Source of the DNA: Wallemia ichthyophaga EXF-994
Taxonomy: Eukaryota; Fungi; Basidiomycota
Reading direction: 5' to 3'
Length of the DNA stretch: 32,000 nt
NCBI RefSeq assembly: GCF_000400465.1
Contig: NW_008806274.1
Location: forward strand, 510,244-542,243
This document shows, one piece after another, positions 1 through 8,446 of the stretch; position 1 is the first letter of the stretch; every line of letters starts with the position of its first letter. The position numbers and the translations under genes were made by a program. A model generated the notes under the pieces. That model had not been told where the DNA came from, searched no databases, and saw nothing but the letters and a program-made list of their open reading frames with translations.

Positions 1-762
1 TTGTGGTGGTGGCGATGCTGCCACTCATATTACCATTGTTATTGCCGCTGCTGCTGCTCGTTGGCTGTCTCTCGCCTGGGGCTGACAGCCTTGGAGCTCG
101 TTTGGCAGGTGGTCTCGTAGGAGTTGCGAGAGATTGCGTGGCTGGCTTCGTTGGGTACTTTTTAGGCGGTGGAGAGGCATTTGAGAAAAAGGTCAATTCA
201 AGACGCACTTCGCCGCGATATTTGCCGCCGTCTTTCGAATCGAGAGTGAGGGGAACCCATACTGAAGAGTCTTAGCGCGTAGATAAGATAAGAATAGTGT
301 AACACCCACAGTCATCCTCGCCTTTGGTAAGTGAACGCGTGAGATCGACGAAAGCCTCACCGACCTTGGTCGGATCCCTGCTATCATCAGCCCAGCATAC
401 GACAGACATACTCTTGGTAGAAGCCGTTGACGCGCTGGAAGACCTTCTACCCATCGAATCCTCGAGTTCAGACATGATGGGAAAGCGCAACTCAGCATCC
501 CATTCAGGCGCTTGGCCACCGCGGTTGATCGTCTGTGTACGCTTGGTAGGAACGGGTGAAGAGGGAATTCTTAGTGTAACGTATGGAGATTGCTTGCCTA
601 TACGCTGCTTGTCAACCAGATTGCGCTGACCAAATGCGTCAAAATAGGAAAACAAGGCGGAAAACCGAACAAGAGACTCACGGCACGATCAACGACGATG
701 ACGAGAGTACCAATCTCATTTCCAGCCTCAAATTGCTTGGGAGGTGGGCGAGGTGGAGACAT
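1..762 (-). CDS. C2-domain cytokinesis protein, Fic1/Inn1-like; 3' end runs off the window start
   Basis: ATG at 762; introns 681-626 (GTGAGT..CAG) and 309-262 (GTGGGT..CAG). Spliced: MSPPRPPPKQFEAGNEIGTLVIVVDRA|RNLVDKQRIGKQSPYVTLRI...KRTQTINRGGQAPEWDAELRF...|LWVPLTLDSKDGGKYRGEVRLELTF, then a Pro/Ser-rich tail open to base 1. As recalled, this resembles the N-terminal C2 domain of S. pombe Fic1. Confidence 0.75.
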
Positions 763-796
763 GTACGATGTTGGTTGTTAAGAAGGAACGGCGAAG

Positions 797-2137
797 ATGG
801 TCAGAGCAATTGCGTCAATATTGGATACAGATTTGTATAAGGTGAGTTTGTGTGTGTTTACGTGGTTATATTATAATTTATATTTAAACAGCTCACAATG
901 CAACAAGCTGTCCTTGAGCATTTCCCCAATGTAGACGTTAGCTATCGATTCACAAATCGCAGTATGCAAATGCGTTTTAATAAACAAGCTTACGATTCTA
1001 TTATGGATGGATTACAATGTGCGTAAGATACGTAACAGCCACACAGCAGCCACTCAACTCACTCCACTCCAAGTCCTTACCCAACTCACCCTACAGCCCC
1101 ATGAATACTCCTATTTACTATCTGATAAGGCCCCCATGTTCAAATCCAGCTATGTCGATTACCTCTCCAACTACCGCTTCAAGCCACACGAGCAACTTGA
1201 CGTACGTCTCGTAAATACAGACAATAACGGCTTTGGTGACCTGGAAATTGATATACGTGGTAAATGGGTGGAGACCATCCTCTATGAGGTACCACTGATG
1301 TCAATTGTCTCCGAGTCTTACTTTGCTTACGTAGACACTGATTGGTCTTATGATGGCCAAGAATCTATCGCCAAAGAAAAAATGAAATCTATGGCTCAGA
1401 ATGGTATTATTCTCGCAGAATTCGGTAGCAGACGTAGAAGATCGTTTCAGGGACATGATATCGTTATACGCGCGCTTAAAGAGGAGAGTGATCGTTTGCA
1501 GAATACAGGCGCATCTGGTAAACTCGGTGGAACGAGTAACGTTTTTTTCGCTCTCAAGTACGATCTCCCTCCTATTGGTACTGTAGCCCATGAATGGACT
1601 ATGGGTATCGGTGCTATCACCGGATATAAGAATGCTAACTACACGGCATTGGATTTATGGGAAAAAACTTTCGGTGACAAACTACTCATCGCTCTCACTG
1701 ATACTTTCACCACTGAAGCTTTCTGGAGGGAATTATTGGACCATCCTCAGAAAGCTAGCAAATGGATTGGGATTAGACAGGACTCAGGTGATCCCGTCAA
1801 ATTCTGCAAGGATGCTAATGCTGTTTATCAGCAGTTGGGTATAGATACTCACACCAAAACTATCGTCTTTAGCGATGGACTGGATAGTGATTTGTGTATC
1901 AAGCTCAAGCAGGTAACAGACGAGCACGGCTTCAAATCTAGTTTTGGTGTTGGTACTTACCTCACAAACGACTACCGCAAAGCATCAAATGTTAGTGAAA
2001 AGAGCAAACCTCTGAATATCGTCATCAAGATAGCCTCAGTGGGAGATACACCGACAATCAAACTGAGCGATGACCTATCCAAGATTACTGGGAATAACAG
2101 TACAGTAAAGACAGTTAGAGATGAATTGCATGTTTAA
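797..2137 (+). CDS. NPT1: Nicotinate phosphoribosyltransferase
   Basis: Exon 1 MVRAIASILDTDLYK, intron 842-891, exon 2 LTMQQAVL, intron from 1019 (acceptor probably 1073). Family motifs DTDLYKLTM, EFGSRRR, GTSNV, GTVAHEW, LTDTFTT, GIRQDSGDP, FSDGL, FGVGT, KLSDD. Confidence 0.95.
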
Positions 2138-2192
2138 TTTTGTTTTTAATATTTTTATATTCTTGCATTTTGCATCTTAAACTCAATCCACG

Positions 2193-2971
2193 ATGATCAC
2201 AAACATCGGAAGACAGATACTTAGAGGAGCAACGAAGAATCTGAGAGTAGCTTCACGCGCTCCAATTGCAAGTCGTGCATTCACAGTAACCCCAATGCGC
2301 TTTGGAGCTGGGAGTAGTGGGTAAAGAACTGCAATCTATGGACCACCGACTGACATGACACAGCCGATGGTACACTCACAGCTCAGCTATCCAACGAGAT
2401 TAAATTCGAAACTGAAAGCGCCAGCCCAGAGGAACCTGAATGGGTTAGAGTTTTCAATGAGGAGAAGATCTGGTCGATTGAGGATAAAGCTGGCTCAGAT
2501 GAGATAGTGCTTAGCAGGCAATTCGGAAATGAGTTTATCAGGGTACTTTTCTCCATTTCAGACCTTGAGCAGGATGAATCTGCAGCTGGACAAGCAGAGG
2601 AGCCCGTCGATGAAGTACCTGCATATAGCGTGAGGATGTCAGTCAGCGTTACTAAACCAAATAGCGGTGCTTTGACCGTTGATTGCGTATCGCAGAATGA
2701 ATCAATTCTTATCGATAATATATCCTTCTACAAAGATTCAAAACTGGCTACACAGCTCACTGCAGACGCAGATTGGGAGAGAAGGGGATTATACATTGGA
2801 CCAGTATTTGAGCACCTCGATTTAGACGTACAAGGTGAATTCCAAAACTATCTCGCTGAAAGAGGTATCGATGAGCGTCTGGCTACGTTCGTCCCTGAGT
2901 ATGCCGTGTACAAGGAGCAAAAGGAGTATGTCAAATGGCTCGACAACGTCAAGAGCTTCATTGAGGCATGA
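2193..2971 (+). CDS. MAM33: Mitochondrial acidic matrix glycoprotein, MAM33/C1QBP family
   Basis: Arg-rich presequence MITNIGRQILRGATKNLRVASRAP; intron 2317-2363 (GTGGGT..CTGAC..CAG). C-terminus YIGPVFEHLD...LAERGIDERLATFVPEYAVYKEQKEYVKWL is typical of the family. Confidence 0.92.
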
Positions 2972-3056
2972 GGAATTAAAAAAGTTTTGTAAAAATTTAA
3001 GCTCGAATTAGCCACAACGGTGTTTGAATAGAAACCACCAATTGGATCAGCTGAAA

Positions 3057-5104
3057 ATGTCAGAGAAATTAACGAGAATTGCACTGGTCAATAACGACAA
3101 GTGTAAACCAAAGTGCGTTTAATGGCTGCTCTGTGTTGCATCATCTCACAGCTTACAGGAAATGTCGTCAAGTGGGTAATCCCAACCAAGAAGACACAAA
3201 TCTAACGAATAAACAAAGGAATGCAAAAGAGCTTGTCCTGTTGTTAAAATGGGTAAGATAGCTTTGTTATCGTATCCCAATCCAGCTCACGCCCATTCCA
3301 GGCAAACTTTGTATCGAAGTTGCTCCATCTGACAAGGTATTTCGATTTTGAACAAATACCTGCAACCAGCTCATGTTTCTACGTAGGTAGCGTTTATTTC
3401 GGAAACTCTCTGTATCGGTTGTGGTCTCTGCGCTAAGAAATGCCCATTCGAAGCAATCAACATTGTCAACCTTCCTACAAACCTCGAGTCCCAAGTCAGC
3501 CACAGATACACCGCCAACTCCTTTAAGCTCCACAGACTTCCCACTCCAAGAGCTGGTCAGGTTCTCGGTATGGTCGGTCAGAATGGTACTGGTAAATCTA
3601 CCGCTTTGAAAATTTTGGCTGGTAAGCAGAAGCCTAATCTCGGTAAATACGACGATCCTCCTGAGTGGACTGAAATCTTGAAACACTACCGTGGCTCTGA
3701 ATTGCAAAACTACTTTTTAAAGATCCTCGAAGACAACCTCAAAGCCATCATCAAGCCTCAATACGTCGATCACATACCTAGAGCCATTAAAGTTCCAATC
3801 ACGGTTGAGAAAATGTTGGATAGTAAGATGGAAATGGGCAACAAGGACCTCATCATGGATCTTCTGCAATTGAGGGTTATCAAGGACCGTGAAATCAACC
3901 AACTCTCCGGTGGTGAGCTCCAGCGATTCGCTATCGCTATGTCATGCGCTCAGAAGGCAGATGTGTATATGTTTGATGAACCATCCTCATATTTGGATAT
4001 CAAACAGCGTCTCAATGCCGCAAAGGTTATCAGAAGTCTCGCGGAAGACCAGGTATACGTTATTGCAGTAGAGCACGATCTGTCTGTTTTGGATTATCTG
4101 TCTGACTTTGTTTGCTGTATGTACGGCATGCCTGCAGCTTACGGTGTCGTCACCATGCCGTTTTCGAGCAGAGAGGGTCTTAACATCTATCTCGATGGTT
4201 TCCTTCCTACTGAAAATATGAGATTCAGACAGGAGTCTCTCAACTTCAAGATCGCAGACGCGGCAGATGATCTTACACTCGATAAGACATCTTCAGTTCC
4301 ATACCCAGCCATGACCAAGACGATGGGCGGGTTCAAGCTCAATGTCAAGGCTGGTGAGTTTACAGATTCGGAGGTGATAGTGATGCTTGGAGAGAACGGT
4401 ACGGGTAAGACAACACTCGTTAGAATGTTGGCTGGTGCCACTAAGGCGGACAATGAAGCAGATCAGCCTGAGCTCAAGGTTTCTATGAAGCCACAAAAGA
4501 TAACACCAAAGTTCCAAGGTACGGTGAGAATGTTGCTGTTGAAGCAGATCAAGGGAGCATTCATGCATCCACAATTCCAGACTGATGTGGTTAGACCAAT
4601 GCAGTTGGATGCCATCATTGACCAGGATGTGCAAACATTGTCTGGTGGTGAGTTACAGAGGGTTGCTATTGTCTTGGCACTTGGTAAACCAGCGTCTGTT
4701 TACTTGCTCGATGAGCCATCATCCTTTTTGGACTCTGAACAGAGAATTAGCGCATCAAGGGTAATTAAGAGGTTCATTTTACATGCAAAGAAGACTGCGT
4801 TTATCGTTGAACACGATTTCATTATGGCTACGTACCTGTCCGATAGAGTTATAGTGTTTGATGGTGAACCGGCAGTCGAAGCAACTGCAAACGCCCCACA
4901 GAGTTTGCTCACTGGGATGAACAAATTCTTGGAGTCGCTCCAGGTTACGTTCAGAAGAGACACGACCAACTATAGACCTAGGGTGAACAAGACTGATTCA
5001 CTCAAAGATAAAGAGCAGAAGTGTGAGTCGGCGGCGGCTTTGTGTGACAAATATACTAACGGTAAAACACAGCGACTGGAAACTTTTTCTTTGTTGGTGA
5101 TTAG
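3057..5104 (+). CDS. RLI1: ABCE1/Rli1 Fe-S ABC ATPase (ribosome recycling)
   Basis: Introns 3113-3158, 3172-3218, 3253-3301, 3337-3386, 5023-5072. Splicing restores [27 protein letters not shown] and [13 protein letters not shown]; two Walker A motifs ([16 protein letters not shown]) and two LSGGELQR signatures; spliced end [14 protein letters not shown]. Confidence 0.97.
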
Positions 5105-5233
5105 ACCGTGTACACATAATATTATTGCATTTCTCCATTCCGTGTTCAAGATTAAGAAAAAAAAAAGAAATACATAGTAGACATGTACATAAAGGGGAAT
5201 GTTCGCTTGAGCTCGTTTAGTTTGTTAGTTTGG

Positions 5234-5750
5234 TTAATTCTTATCAGATTGCGTCTTGGCAATGGGGACGACTATGATGATGATGATTACGATGACGACG
5301 ATTGCTAGGATGATCTTCATACGCGTGTCTTTCCACCACATAGCCTTCCTTACACGATGAGCGCCTTTCCTAAAACCTTGAGCGGAGACAGCGAGATCGT
5401 CTGTCTTGTCCTGGAGCTGGTCGAGTCTCTCACCACGTTCAGAGACCTGTAAAAGAGTGTAAATGGTTATAAGCAAGGATAGAATCTACATCAACGGCTG
5501 TCAACGGACCTTTGTGATATTTTCTCTCATGATGCCAACCGTGTCATCGATCTGGGCTTGTATGGCAGCTGTCTTTGGCTGCAGAGTGGGAGTGAGCTGG
5601 GTGTAAAACAACGGTGGATTAAACAGACGTTTCCAGCACCGCCATTGGCAGCGTTCGCACCGCTGTTTTCTGGACCTGGGTATGGATCGTATGGGGCAGA
5701 CCTGGGCGGTGTAAATATTTAATATTCCTTCCAACCACTCATGCTCACAT
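5234..5750 (-). CDS. SNC1: Synaptobrevin/VAMP R-SNARE
   Basis: Exons 5750-5749 (AT), 5701-5629, 5578-5510, 5446-5234. Protein [10 protein letters not shown]...[62 protein letters not shown] followed by a C-terminal TM helix. Confidence 0.93.
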
Positions 5751-5775
5751 CGTCGTATAGTGAAGAGGCACAGCG

Positions 5776-6570
5776 ATGAGTGCGGCGTCGTTGAAAAAGA
5801 AATTAACGGGGAGTTTACAGAAACTAAATCTCGACGCGCGGATACAGCTCATGTCTGGCCAGCTCAACAGACTGACGGGCTACGAGCGTATCGAGAAACT
5901 CAAAGCAGTGGTTATTGATGCCGAGCAGGCGATAAAGCATTCGCGGGGAATGCTTGTTGATAGCAAGCAAGAGTATGGCAAATATACAGAGATGCGTAGA
6001 TCGTCGCAGAAGCAAGTGAATGATTTGCTGTCAAACAAATCCAGTTGGGGGGATGTAGAGCTCAATAGATTCACGCAGCTCGTCAAGAGCGATCATAGCA
6101 TTGAGAAGCTCGAGAAGGAGTACTCGGGCAAGGTGGAGGAGTACGAGCGGTTGGTTGATCGCGGCTTTGAGAAGCTCCTCAAGAGCATCCTCGAACGCTA
6201 CCACGAGGAGCAGATATGGTCAGATAAAATAAGATCGGTATCGAGCAACTACACTCTCATGGCTCTTTCTGTAAACGTCCTCGTCTTCCTCACCGCTATC
6301 GTCTTTGTCGAGCCTTGGAAACGGTCCAAAATGCTCAAAGAGCTGGAAATAAACCTCGATCAAGACCAGATCAGACTGCTGGGCGAGATTGATAGCATGC
6401 GAGATGATATACGCAGCCTTAAACCGATCCCCGCCATGTCTTCTTCCCTTGTACCTCCACCGCCATCACCCCCAACGACCGTGGATAGCGCTATTATCAC
6501 CAACAATCCCTTCGCCAGCCTCTCTCTGGGTATCGTTATTGGAATCTCCAGTTTCTATTGTTTATGTTGA
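5776..6570 (+). CDS. SHE9: Mitochondrial inner-membrane She9/Mdm33 family protein
   Basis: Intronless ORF with LNRLTGYERIEKLK, RRSSQKQVNDLLSNKSSW, LKSILERYHEEQIWSDKIRSVS, TM segment NVLVFLTAIVFVEPWKR and a second C-terminal hydrophobic helix. The start could alternatively be the Met at 5851. Confidence 0.9.
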   Translation: MSAASLKKKLTGSLQKLNLDARIQLMSGQLNRLTGYERIEKLKAVVIDAEQAIKHSRGMLVDSKQEYGKYTEMRRSSQKQVNDLLSNKSSWGDVELNRFTQLVKSDHSIEKLEKEYSGKVEEYERLVDRGFEKLLKSILERYHEEQIWSDKIRSVSSNYTLMALSVNVLVFLTAIVFVEPWKRSKMLKELEINLDQDQIRLLGEIDSMRDDIRSLKPIPAMSSSLVPPPPSPPTTVDSAIITNNPFASLSLGIVIGISSFYCLC

Positions 6571-7595
6571 TTATACTCCCTTTTAGAATCCTTCTGCTTG
6601 TTGGGCTTGGTTTGTGTGTCTACACCGAGGCGCTGTCGAGGTACAAAGGCCTTTTCGATGTAAATCTGCGGTGTTTGTGGAATATTATCTGCGTATATCT
6701 CGCTGGTGTGGGATGCAGTTTGCTAGTTTACGAAGCCACGACTACACACGGCGACATGGACAGCAAGGCGTTTATACCCGCGCTGACTTATATAGTCATC
6801 GCTCTCACTCTCTTCTACCCTTTCGATGCCTTCTACAAGCAGCAGAGGAGCCAATTTCTCAGCACACTCACCCAGATCATCTACTCACCCGTCACCAAGG
6901 CTATTACATTCAACCAGGTGTTTTTAGCAGATATACTCACCTCGTATGCAAAAGTTTTCGGTGACTTCTACTCTTCAATCATTCAATGTCTTGATCCGGA
7001 GAGTTCTTTCGCAATAACGCCCCAGTCGGCCAACTACATGGCTCCGCTGTTCACAACTATTCCCTACCTGCTCAGACTGAGGCAGTGTGTAGTGGAGTAC
7101 ATAGCCAGTGACTACCAGCAGAAGCGTTCGCTAGCCAACGCCCTCAAGTACGCATCCGCTCTTCCCGTGATTGCCTTCTCGGCGATCCACAAGCACAACA
7201 AGAGCGTGTATCCGTGGTGGTTGATTAGTGTAGTCGTCAATTCCCTCTACTCGTTCTGGTGGGATGTTCGCAATGACTGGGGGCTGAATTTCTTGGATCG
7301 CGATGTGTGGTTGGATGACGGTGTCGAGAAAACTCCCCTCCGCCAAACTCTCCTATACAGACAACCGGGCAAATACTACGCTGCTATCCTCGCCGACTTT
7401 TTCCTGCGCTTCACTTGGTCTCTTAAGCTGTCCTCCCATTTACACGCTTACGTCCAACTCGAGTCGGGCGTGTTTGCATTCGAAATACTCGAAATCCTTC
7501 GCAGATATCTGTGGTGTCTGTTTAGGCTCGAATGGGAAGTCATCAAGACGGAGGAATATCCTAGTATACCCATACACCAGTACACAACGGAGTAG
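6564..7595 (+). CDS. ERD1: ERD1-like EXS-domain membrane protein
   Basis: First in-frame ATG at 6564 (the ORF track starts at TTG 6558). EXS motifs FNQVFLADILTSYAKVFGD, PYLLRLRQC, NALKYASALP, NSLYSFWWDV..DWGL, LRFTWSLKLS, EILRRYLWCLFRLEWE. N-terminal LPFRILLLVGLG matches the PLP(F/Y)R motif I recall from fungal ERD1-like proteins. Confidence 0.85.
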   Translation: MLIILPFRILLLVGLGLCVYTEALSRYKGLFDVNLRCLWNIICVYLAGVGCSLLVYEATTTHGDMDSKAFIPALTYIVIALTLFYPFDAFYKQQRSQFLSTLTQIIYSPVTKAITFNQVFLADILTSYAKVFGDFYSSIIQCLDPESSFAITPQSANYMAPLFTTIPYLLRLRQCVVEYIASDYQQKRSLANALKYASALPVIAFSAIHKHNKSVYPWWLISVVVNSLYSFWWDVRNDWGLNFLDRDVWLDDGVEKTPLRQTLLYRQPGKYYAAILADFFLRFTWSLKLSSHLHAYVQLESGVFAFEILEILRRYLWCLFRLEWEVIKTEEYPSIPIHQYTTE

Positions 7596-7669
7596 AAAAG
7601 GTGTTATAAAGTGTGTTAATATGGTAGTGTGGTAATATGGTAAATGAATAAAATACAAATGCAAATAAT

Positions 7670-8446
7670 CTAATTACTCTGGCTAATATGGCGACTGTCC
7701 TCGCTACTCGTCTGGTAATGCTCCATCACCCTCTTAAGAGCTTCGGGGTTGTCTTTGAACTCGGCCCTCCTGACCTCGTACATGTAGCGTGTATCTTCTA
7801 TCTTCTTGAGGCTATTTTCGAGTGTCTTGAGTTTCTGCTGGAGGGTGTGGAAATGGTGTGTGTTATCCTGTAGCACTAGTTTCACACTCGTGATCAGCTC
7901 GACGATCCTCTCGATCAGCGTGAGGTCTGCCATGCCGAGGAGTTGTATCGCCATACGCATCAATTCGCCTGTGAGATCACCCAGCCCAGCGAGGTATTCA
8001 AGTGGGCGTACCGGGACGATGGGTTGGTTATCAATCGACAGCATAAGTTGAATTTTATCCACGGTAATAAGCGTATCGCTCTCGAGGAACTCCAGAAATG
8101 ATATCGCCTCTATATACTCTTCCAAACCTGCGAAAGCGAATTTGGAGAAGGAGTGGCGGATATTTGATCGCTGAATGGGGTCTGAATGGGTGAACTCTAC
8201 GGCTACTCTCTCCACCCAGATTTTGTGTATCTGCGTGAGCTGTGTATTGCGGATACTAGACAGCTGGTTGAATTGCTCGATCCGCGGTTGTTTGTACACG
8301 CGGTGTAAGGAGAAGATCATTCTCTTGCTCAGGGCTGTAATGTCCCGCGATGCTTTTATGACGCGCTCACGCTTATCTTGGTCTTGGTCTACCGTGTGCT
8401 TTATAGACTCGAATTCGCCGTTGATTCGTTGTGAGCGTGTGGACAT
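7670..8446 (-). CDS. TSNAX: Translin-associated factor X (TRAX), translin family
   Basis: ATG at 8446 in GCCATG context; DKRERVIKASRDITALSKRMIFSLHR, GLEEYIEAISF, EYLAGLGDLTGELMR, KLKTLENSLKKIE. The acidic C3PO catalytic motifs appear intact. Confidence 0.88.
   Translation of the reverse strand: MSTRSQRINGEFESIKHTVDQDQDKRERVIKASRDITALSKRMIFSLHRVYKQPRIEQFNQLSSIRNTQLTQIHKIWVERVAVEFTHSDPIQRSNIRHSFSKFAFAGLEEYIEAISFLEFLESDTLITVDKIQLMLSIDNQPIVPVRPLEYLAGLGDLTGELMRMAIQLLGMADLTLIERIVELITSVKLVLQDNTHHFHTLQQKLKTLENSLKKIEDTRYMYEVRRAEFKDNPEALKRVMEHYQTSSEDSRHISQSN

Follow-up and report, generated by a model that had tools for sequence, protein, structure and literature searches.

A conserved seven-nucleotide coding overlap between SHE9 and an ERD1-like gene in the free-living fungus Wallemia

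Compacted eukaryotic genomes, such as those of Encephalitozoon cuniculi, Antonospora locustae and the nucleomorphs, combine tiny spacers with shortened proteins and gene-caller errors, as far as they are summarized in PMC2803860 (Williams et al., 2005; Corradi et al., 2008). In E. cuniculi, polycistronic RNAs occur alongside monocistronic ones, with separate 5' ends for downstream genes (Peyretaillade et al., PMC2803860), and 120 of the 129 head-to-tail overlaps between coding sequences that were first annotated were gone after correction of the start codons (PMC2803860). Here, we describe a 32,000-nucleotide stretch of DNA from the halophilic basidiomycete Wallemia ichthyophaga EXF-994 (contig NW_008806274.1, positions 510,244 to 542,243 of the forward strand; hereafter the window, whose own numbering is used throughout), in which the start codon of an ERD1-like gene of the EXS family lies within the last codons of a SHE9/MDM33 gene on the same strand. 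Tiny spacers, shortened proteins and gene-caller errors are all found at this locus. In compacted genomes, starts or ends of transcripts are expected to fall within neighboring genes, whereas the Wallemia locus is known here from its sequence alone; as far as the analogy reaches, overlapping transcription in such genomes is the closest analogue of what we describe.

The likeness to the microsporidia has clear limits. Wallemia is a free-living basidiomycete with a genome of 9.6 Mb and ordinary introns, and not an intracellular parasite, and its coding overlap, unlike most of those first reported in E. cuniculi, survives every check and is conserved across a deep divergence. Another comparison is offered by the polycistronic read-through transcripts of the Agaricomycetes (Gordon et al., 2015; PMC4503453), which likewise join same-strand neighbors in basidiomycetes, in pairs that are conserved in relatives. 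However, the Agaricomycete units consist of non-overlapping open reading frames with stops in all frames between them and were identified from long-read RNA evidence (PMC4503453), whereas SHE9 and ERD1 overlap by 7 nucleotides and fall outside that definition. The SHE9-ERD1 pairing, unlike those units, is also confined to the Wallemia lineage. A literature search returned no paper linking Wallemia with polycistronic or overlapping genes.

The SHE9/MDM33 coding sequence (5776..6570, plus strand, 264 amino acids) ends with a TGA at 6568-6570, and the ERD1-like coding sequence (6564..7595, plus strand, 343 amino acids) begins with an ATG at 6564-6566, as read from the open reading frames and the Pfam matches. 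The heptamer ATGTTGA (6564..6570, plus strand) is thus both the start of ERD1 and the stop of SHE9, with a 7-nucleotide overlap, no intergenic DNA and ERD1 in the -1 frame relative to SHE9. The match to the She9_MDM33 family (PF05546) scores 192.5 bits (threshold 22.2; E = 9.5e-57) and extends over positions 11-188 of the 198 in the profile, and an identical 264-residue SHE9 is annotated as a stand-alone gene in GCA_000400465.1, the type-strain assembly. The match to the EXS family (PF03124) scores 259.1 bits (threshold 25; E = 8.5e-77) and extends over positions 22-330 of the 330 in the profile, and the best named homologs of the 343-residue protein are fungal endoplasmic reticulum (ER)-retention/ERD1 proteins. 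The top protein matches are those of W. ichthyophaga, with identities of 99-100%.

Sequences of the form ATGNTGA occur 37 times in the window, where 26.8 are expected, and are so frequent by chance that the heptamer alone carries no meaning; what exceeds chance is its conservation. We compared five taxa: W. ichthyophaga, as represented by the window; a Wallemia in a Logan assembly (L001), with an ERD1 protein 83% identical to that of the window in BLASTP; W. hederae (L003; 75%); W. mellicola (L002, SPRC01000003.1; 65%); and an AT-rich relative known from metagenome scaffolds only (L004), in which ERD1 is 46% identical in BLASTP and 51% in the MAFFT alignment, and She9 48%. The identical ATGTTGA, with the same 7-nucleotide overlap, joins the orthologous SHE9 and ERD1 reading frames in all five. 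The ERD1 frames of the other four taxa (341-353 amino acids) begin at the overlapping ATG, and the gene order of a minus-strand SNARE gene, SHE9, ERD1 and a minus-strand translin gene is kept throughout. Furthermore, the same junction is present in several independent W. ichthyophaga assemblies, and its repetition across these and across the five taxa rules out an indel artefact. A sequence-only reading of the window had proposed the 7-nucleotide overlap without intergenic DNA, had named alignment of the orthologous locus as a check, and had listed a sequencing indel near the 3' end of SHE9 as a possible source of error. The overlap is borne out by the reading frames, by Pfam and by its preservation in the four other taxa, and the indel is thereby excluded.

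In Cryptococcus neoformans and Dacryopinax, SHE9 is not adjacent to ERD1. A metagenome scan with an ERD1 profile recovered 80 other fungal ERD1 loci, none of them Wallemia-like and none with She9 nearby, and a metagenome scan with a degenerate pattern of the junction gave no matches. The absence of the adjacency from the other fungi examined suggests that the pairing arose in the Wallemia lineage. On these comparisons, SHE9 and ERD1 are separate, unrelated genes, and the overlap of their coding sequences predates the split between Wallemia and its AT-rich relative. The latter (L004 is scaffold_6260 of ENA ERZ28597369) was encountered in numerous metagenome and Logan assemblies, with one variant of its She9 on 33 contigs, the longest of which is 276 kb; the proteins of this relative are 48-50% (She9) and about 46-51% (ERD1) identical to those of Wallemia, in the same gene order.

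The variation at each codon position, compared among the four Wallemia species, changes frame at the junction. Over the 74 nucleotides before the ERD1 ATG (-74..-1, 6490-6563), read in the SHE9 frame, the variable sites amount to 14 of 25 first, 9 of 25 second and 20 of 24 third positions, and over the 88 nucleotides after the TGA, read in the ERD1 frame, to 15 of 29, 9 of 30 and 28 of 29, respectively. The switch from one frame to the other coincides exactly with an invariant block, which is TATGTTGAT in the four Wallemia and ATGTTGAT in the five taxa. The A of the ERD1 ATG belongs, in SHE9, to a codon that reads TTA, CTA, CTA, ATA and ACA in the five taxa (Leu, Leu, Leu, Ile and Thr), and the retention of this A in spite of the drifting SHE9 residue is direct evidence for selection on the ERD1 start codon. 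Two other bases, at 6567 and 6569, are free in both frames and nevertheless invariant in the five taxa: at 6567, SHE9 has Cys and ERD1 has Leu with either T or C, and at 6569, SHE9 has a stop and ERD1 has Leu with either G or A. Within the same two genes, a single codon has been kept across the five taxa in none of the 42 conserved Leu columns and in 15% of the conserved two-fold columns. The SHE9 stop is TGA in all five taxa, while the ERD1 stops vary. The argument from the invariance of the heptamer concerns one site.

Several observations indicate that the overlapping ATG is the genuine start of ERD1. Residues 5-16 of the protein, LPFRILLLVGLG (6576..6611, plus strand), correspond to an N-terminal motif of fungal ERD1 proteins, for which an alignment with nine other fungal members gives the consensus PLPFRVLxLIxLG, and codons 2-30 show clean coding periodicity. 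The reference model of W. mellicola CBS 633.66 (EIM21103.1, 341 amino acids) begins at the overlapping ATG. A downstream in-frame ATG (6756..6758, plus strand) is where the 279-residue model of the type strain begins, with MDSKAF (positions 3981..4820 of scaffold KE007224.1 in GCA_000400465.1, here L006, equal to 6756..7595 of the window). We reject it as the start: it would drop 64 N-terminal residues, including the motif, and an in-frame ATG at this place (+192) is present only in W. ichthyophaga and the Logan Wallemia. The loss of conserved sequence from a start near 6756, and the place of LPFR within a conserved ERD1 motif, had both been anticipated from the window alone and agree with the alignment.

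Likewise, the end of SHE9 has the character of a functional C-terminus. It consists of a hydrophobic helix, SLSLGIVIGISSFYCLC (6517..6567, plus strand), whose protein sequence is conserved in the five taxa, and equivalent terminal helices are seen in the aligned She9 proteins of Puccinia, Sporobolomyces, Tilletia and others. This matches the earlier suggestion that SHE9 ends in such a helix. Two hydrophobic segments, LMALSVNVLVFLTAIVFV first and SLSLGIVIGISSFYCLC at the C-terminus, align with other basidiomycete She9 proteins, as judged from the alignment only. Taken together, the comparisons show that SHE9 is translated to its TGA and that ERD1 is translated from the ATG within the last SHE9 codons.

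Both proteins are short at their N-termini. Most of the other basidiomycete She9 proteins in the alignment carry an N-terminal extension of 60-130 residues, which is presumably the region of the presequence. Wallemia She9 lacks this extension, and only about 20 basic residues precede its conserved domain (5776-5840). ERD1 has four residues before its first conserved motif, where other fungi carry 4-20 more. Such trimmed N-termini would fit protein shortening during genome compaction.

How, then, is ERD1 expressed? At a rough probability of 0.55, we favor nested transcripts that end at the same 3' site, with the start site of ERD1 inside the tail of SHE9. ERD1 would be translated from its own shorter capped mRNA, with a 5' end in about the final 120 coding nucleotides of SHE9. 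The mRNA of SHE9 would probably extend over ERD1 as well and use the same poly(A) site, beyond 7595, so that a long RNA covering both genes would exist and mainly serve SHE9. A promoter internal to SHE9 would thereby be the likeliest of the three options in the sequence-only reading, the others being one mRNA that yields both proteins by reinitiation or leaky scanning, and a splice that fuses the two genes. The phrase used there, "candidate bicistron," is fair as a candidate and is not the best-supported interpretation. SHE9 acts at the mitochondrial inner membrane and ERD1 in the Golgi/ER, and to our knowledge there is no functional link between them that would reward coupling. The overlap would in that case be a frozen by-product of genome compaction and not a device that couples the two proteins.

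The support for the nested transcripts is indirect. It comes from the tight spacers, the unstructured junction, the AUG-free run ahead of ERD1, the lack of a viral-type motif or structure, the lack of room for a SHE9 terminator, the lack of a functional link between the proteins, and the precedent in Encephalitozoon. The spacers around the locus measure, in order, 85, 129, 33, -7, 74 and 111 nucleotides, which is too short for promoters and terminators, as in the overlapping transcription units of compacted genomes. The genome of W. ichthyophaga holds 514 genes per Mb and is about three-quarters coding (PMC3849046). With a locus and a genome this compact, promoters, terminators and regulatory DNA must sit within neighboring genes, and since SHE9 leaves no space for a terminator ahead of ERD1, the SHE9 mRNA probably runs on through it.

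The candidate leader and transcription-start region of ERD1 is an AUG-free, pyrimidine-rich and weakly structured tail of SHE9 (6439..6563, plus strand). The strongest C-over-G and T-over-A skew of the neighborhood falls within it. The last ATG upstream of the ERD1 ATG lies at -128 in the window, -140 in the Logan Wallemia, -175 in W. hederae, -122 in W. mellicola and -163 in the AT-rich relative, and the resulting ATG-free run of 122-175 nucleotides is the longest joint run of the 61 in the locus. The interval from -90 to +46 around the ERD1 AUG is less stable than its shuffles, with fold z-scores of +2.7, +1.7, +1.0, +2.1 and +0.8 across the five taxa, and it is in all five the least structured of 25 offsets over the two genes (mean z +1.67 versus -0.2, with a standard deviation of 1.09, elsewhere). 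The RNAalifold consensus at the junction contains 0 pairs in the five taxa, and an Rfam search there returned no family. The unstructured junction fits an accessible initiation site and argues against a structured element for reinitiation or entry.

At the 3' side, an AATAAA (7647..7652, plus strand) in the 74-nucleotide spacer between ERD1 and translin is a candidate polyadenylation signal that may be common to the SHE9 and ERD1 transcripts. An AATAAA or ATTAAA is found 4-52 nucleotides past the ERD1 stop in four of the five taxa, and neither hexamer occurs within the first 630 nucleotides of ERD1 in the four Wallemia, a mapping that is merely suggestive since fungal poly(A) signals are degenerate.

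Some observations sit uneasily with the nested transcripts. A simulation with synonymous codons indicated that the AUG-free run is wholly set by the SHE9 peptide, as an out-of-frame ATG is not encodable there, and a test for depletion of upstream AUGs therefore has no independent weight. No promoter motif was identified. The contigs from Logan and the European Nucleotide Archive (ENA) that carry the SHE9 and ERD1 reading frames are all genomic, colinear and without poly(A). They include those from look-ups with She9, the 1392-nucleotide Logan contig L005 and other short contigs, several of which span the opposite-strand neighbors, and an exact look-up of the 343-residue ERD1 protein in a search for transcripts gave no match. 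Furthermore, a pyrimidine occupies position -3 of the ERD1 AUG in four of the five taxa, where all five neighboring genes have a purine; such a context is poor for scanning and irrelevant for reinitiation. Finally, nested transcripts give no account of why ATGTTGA is invariant at its two doubly free bases and why the SHE9 stop is always TGA.

The last points lead to the foremost rival, termination-reinitiation on a bicistronic mRNA, in which a 40S subunit stays on the RNA after the UGA, steps back four bases and starts ERD1 at the AUG, which would tie ERD1 output to the translation of SHE9. The geometry is familiar from viral cassettes, namely calicivirus and influenza B with their termination upstream ribosome-binding sites (TURBS), the AUGA of Helminthosporium victoriae virus 190S and the UAAUG of Cryphonectria hypovirus 1. 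In these, the stop of a long reading frame overlaps the next start within a few bases, the start context is unimportant and fungal hosts support such events (PMC3035654; PMC10275272). The SHE9-ERD1 stop/start overlap is within the range of the viral UAAUG and AUGA (PMC3035654; PMC10275272), and the weak -3 context of the ERD1 AUG would not matter (PMC10275272). The identity of the heptamer in five taxa, the doubly free bases and the constant TGA included, also speaks for reinitiation. So does the long RNA that probably spans both genes, SHE9 having no room for a terminator, as do the polycistronic RNAs documented in Agaricomycetes (PMC4503453).

On the other hand, reinitiation after a frame of 264 codons normally works very poorly unless a dedicated element lies upstream, and the known cases after long frames depend on sequence or structure in the upstream coding region (PMC10275272). 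The viral cassettes need such ribosome-holding sequence or structure, and SHE9-ERD1 shares their overlap but neither the upstream motif nor the RNA structure; it is, moreover, a nuclear pair of cellular genes and not a viral RNA as in the TURBS systems. No UGGGA-type motif within about 80 nucleotides of the SHE9 stop is conserved beyond the needs of the SHE9 protein, the Wallemia 18S not having been compared. The sole G-rich positions come from a Gly codon (UGGGU, AGGGA, CGGUA, CGGUA and AGGAG in the five taxa), and upstream of the junction nothing is conserved beyond what the protein requires. The 0 pairs in the RNAalifold consensus, a region less structured than shuffled controls, the unrelated functions of the two proteins and an invariance argument that rests on one site also count against it.

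A variant of reinitiation would ease the problem of length. In three taxa, SHE9 has a late in-frame Met, at -128, -140 and -122. If an internal transcript began ahead of it, some 43 codons at the end of SHE9 would act as a short upstream reading frame ending on the ERD1 AUG, and eukaryotic reinitiation would then be more efficient. With this variant included, we consider it unlikely, though well worth keeping in view, that reinitiation takes place at the conserved AUGUUGA without a TURBS-like tether or RNA structure, and that it has been kept since the split from the AT-rich relative.

Prokaryotic coupling at ATGA or ATGNTGA has an identical geometry, in which a gene starts on the same strand, in the -1 frame, within the final codons of the one before it, but the likeness is one of form only. 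Coupling in prokaryotes relies on the behavior of the 70S and 30S ribosomes and on operon transcription, and we know of no general equivalent on the eukaryotic ribosome. Cellular cases of coupled termination-reinitiation, in which overlapping downstream frames are accessed after termination, have been reported (Gould et al., 2014, as cited in PMC10275272). In the account given there, the products have no known biological role, whereas the downstream frame here is a conserved housekeeping gene for which coupling is only a candidate.

A fused She9-EXS protein, produced by splicing over the junction, is what several GenBank models depict, and we regard it as very improbable. None of the public Wallemia annotations shows the overlap; their errors are a fusion through a pseudo-intron, an ERD1 cut at 6756 or a partial SHE9. 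The type-strain set has the correct SHE9 of 264 amino acids and the ERD1 truncated to 279, whereas in the W. mellicola CBS 633.66 reference ERD1 is correct (341 amino acids) and She9 is a partial model of 166 amino acids, which covers the domain with both ends missing and is uninformative on untranslated regions (UTRs). The fused models, among them TIB00673.1 and TIB82150.1, measure 600, 549 and 524 amino acids in W. ichthyophaga, 595 in W. hederae and 583 and 559 in W. mellicola.

The presence of such models in public records and of in-frame GT...AG pairs in every species could be taken in favor of a fusion. Nevertheless, the junction differs by species (17 nucleotides in W. ichthyophaga, about 44 in W. 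hederae and about 62 in W. mellicola), and the models are ab initio. They were made with MAKER, Augustus (Laccaria parameters) and SNAP, without use of RNA evidence and with introns of at least 10 bp kept, where the mean intron is 68 nucleotides (PMC6738226). The 17-nucleotide "intron" of E3P94_02014 (600 amino acids; 6535..6551, plus strand), which joins ...LSLGI to FLLFMLIILPF, is an artefact. The sequence-only reading had pointed to another splice, a 71-nucleotide GTGGAT...CAG (6481..6551, plus strand). This pair is indeed in frame, but it is present only in W. ichthyophaga and deletes the conserved helix, and we reject the fusion built on it. A systematic scan found chance in-frame GT...AG pairs in every species and no donor/acceptor pair conserved in position across the five taxa; a G at +5 occurs in one candidate donor only (GTGAGA, in the Logan Wallemia) and is not conserved. 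Splice fusion as the main product would thus require an unconserved intron and would delete the conserved SHE9 helix, the ERD1 N-terminus or both. Coding periodicity runs to the stop and from the ATG, and neither a conserved stop/start nor a frame switch would be expected within an intron.

The same annotation sets hold other obvious chimeras. On the W. mellicola sequence SPRC01000003.1 (L002, positions 1-6610), a 1129-residue GenBank model joins NAPRTase, MAM33 and an RLI1-type ABC protein, and a 356-residue minus-strand model spans SHE9 and ERD1 entirely to fuse translin with synaptobrevin. The population-genomics annotations contain about 4188 gene models and the reference 4884 (PMC6738226; PMC3849046), and the shortfall of about 700 suggests that merged genes may be common in the former.

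Leaky scanning or an internal ribosome entry element on the long RNA is just as hard to credit. Leaky scanning, which had also been suggested from the window, is excluded because the many SHE9 AUGs prevent scanning ribosomes from reaching 6564; of the 27 ATGs in the two genes, the majority lie within or ahead of the SHE9 body. Internal entry finds no conserved or stable structure near the junction and no Rfam match. We also rejected -1 frameshifting into the ERD1 frame, as a slippery heptamer is absent and the ERD1 frame of W. mellicola is closed two codons upstream of the ATG. That the overlap is unreal, with ERD1 starting at 6756 as in the 279-residue type-strain model or with an assembly error at the 3' end of SHE9, is scarcely credible given the loss of the N-terminal motif, the periodicity of codons 2-30, the restriction of the +192 ATG to two taxa and the presence of the junction in all five.

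Even where eukaryotic genomes are most compacted, coding sequences rarely show a true overlap on the same strand. The overlap between SHE9 and ERD1 is unusually well conserved for a free-living fungus, being kept base for base between taxa whose ERD1 proteins are about half identical, and offers a clean case of compaction freezing the ends of genes, with a modest chance that something more unusual is involved. Reinitiation, if true, would provide a natural case, in an essential gene, of prokaryote-style coupling after a long reading frame in a free-living eukaryote. In either case, the locus is a compact and well-defined test bed for nested transcripts versus translational coupling in the expression of a housekeeping gene without intergenic DNA.

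The genes on either side are equally close. Upstream, a divergent gene for a synaptobrevin-type SNARE (5234..5742, minus strand) was identified from the Pfam family Synaptobrevin, the type-strain annotation (L006 2459..2967) and its minus-strand translation. Its ATG (5742, minus strand) and that of SHE9 (5776) are 33 nucleotides apart, and both promoters and leaders must overlap each other or the adjoining coding sequences. In the AT-rich relative this gap is roughly 450 nucleotides, and the SHE9/ERD1 overlap there is unchanged. Downstream lies a convergent translin gene (7670..8446, minus strand; Pfam Translin; type-strain annotation L006 4895..5671), which lies 74 nucleotides past the ERD1 stop. 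The stop codons of the two convergent genes are thus separated by 74 nucleotides (7596-7669), or 43 in W. mellicola, and their 3' UTRs, unless very short, must overlap in antisense. Yet another small feature, in the spacer between RLI1 and the SNARE gene, is a short plus-strand reading frame (5183-5308) that codes for a run of Asp and Tyr. On the opposite strand is the Ile/Val-rich membrane anchor of the SNARE, and the short frame is probably a mirror image of the anchor codons and not a gene.

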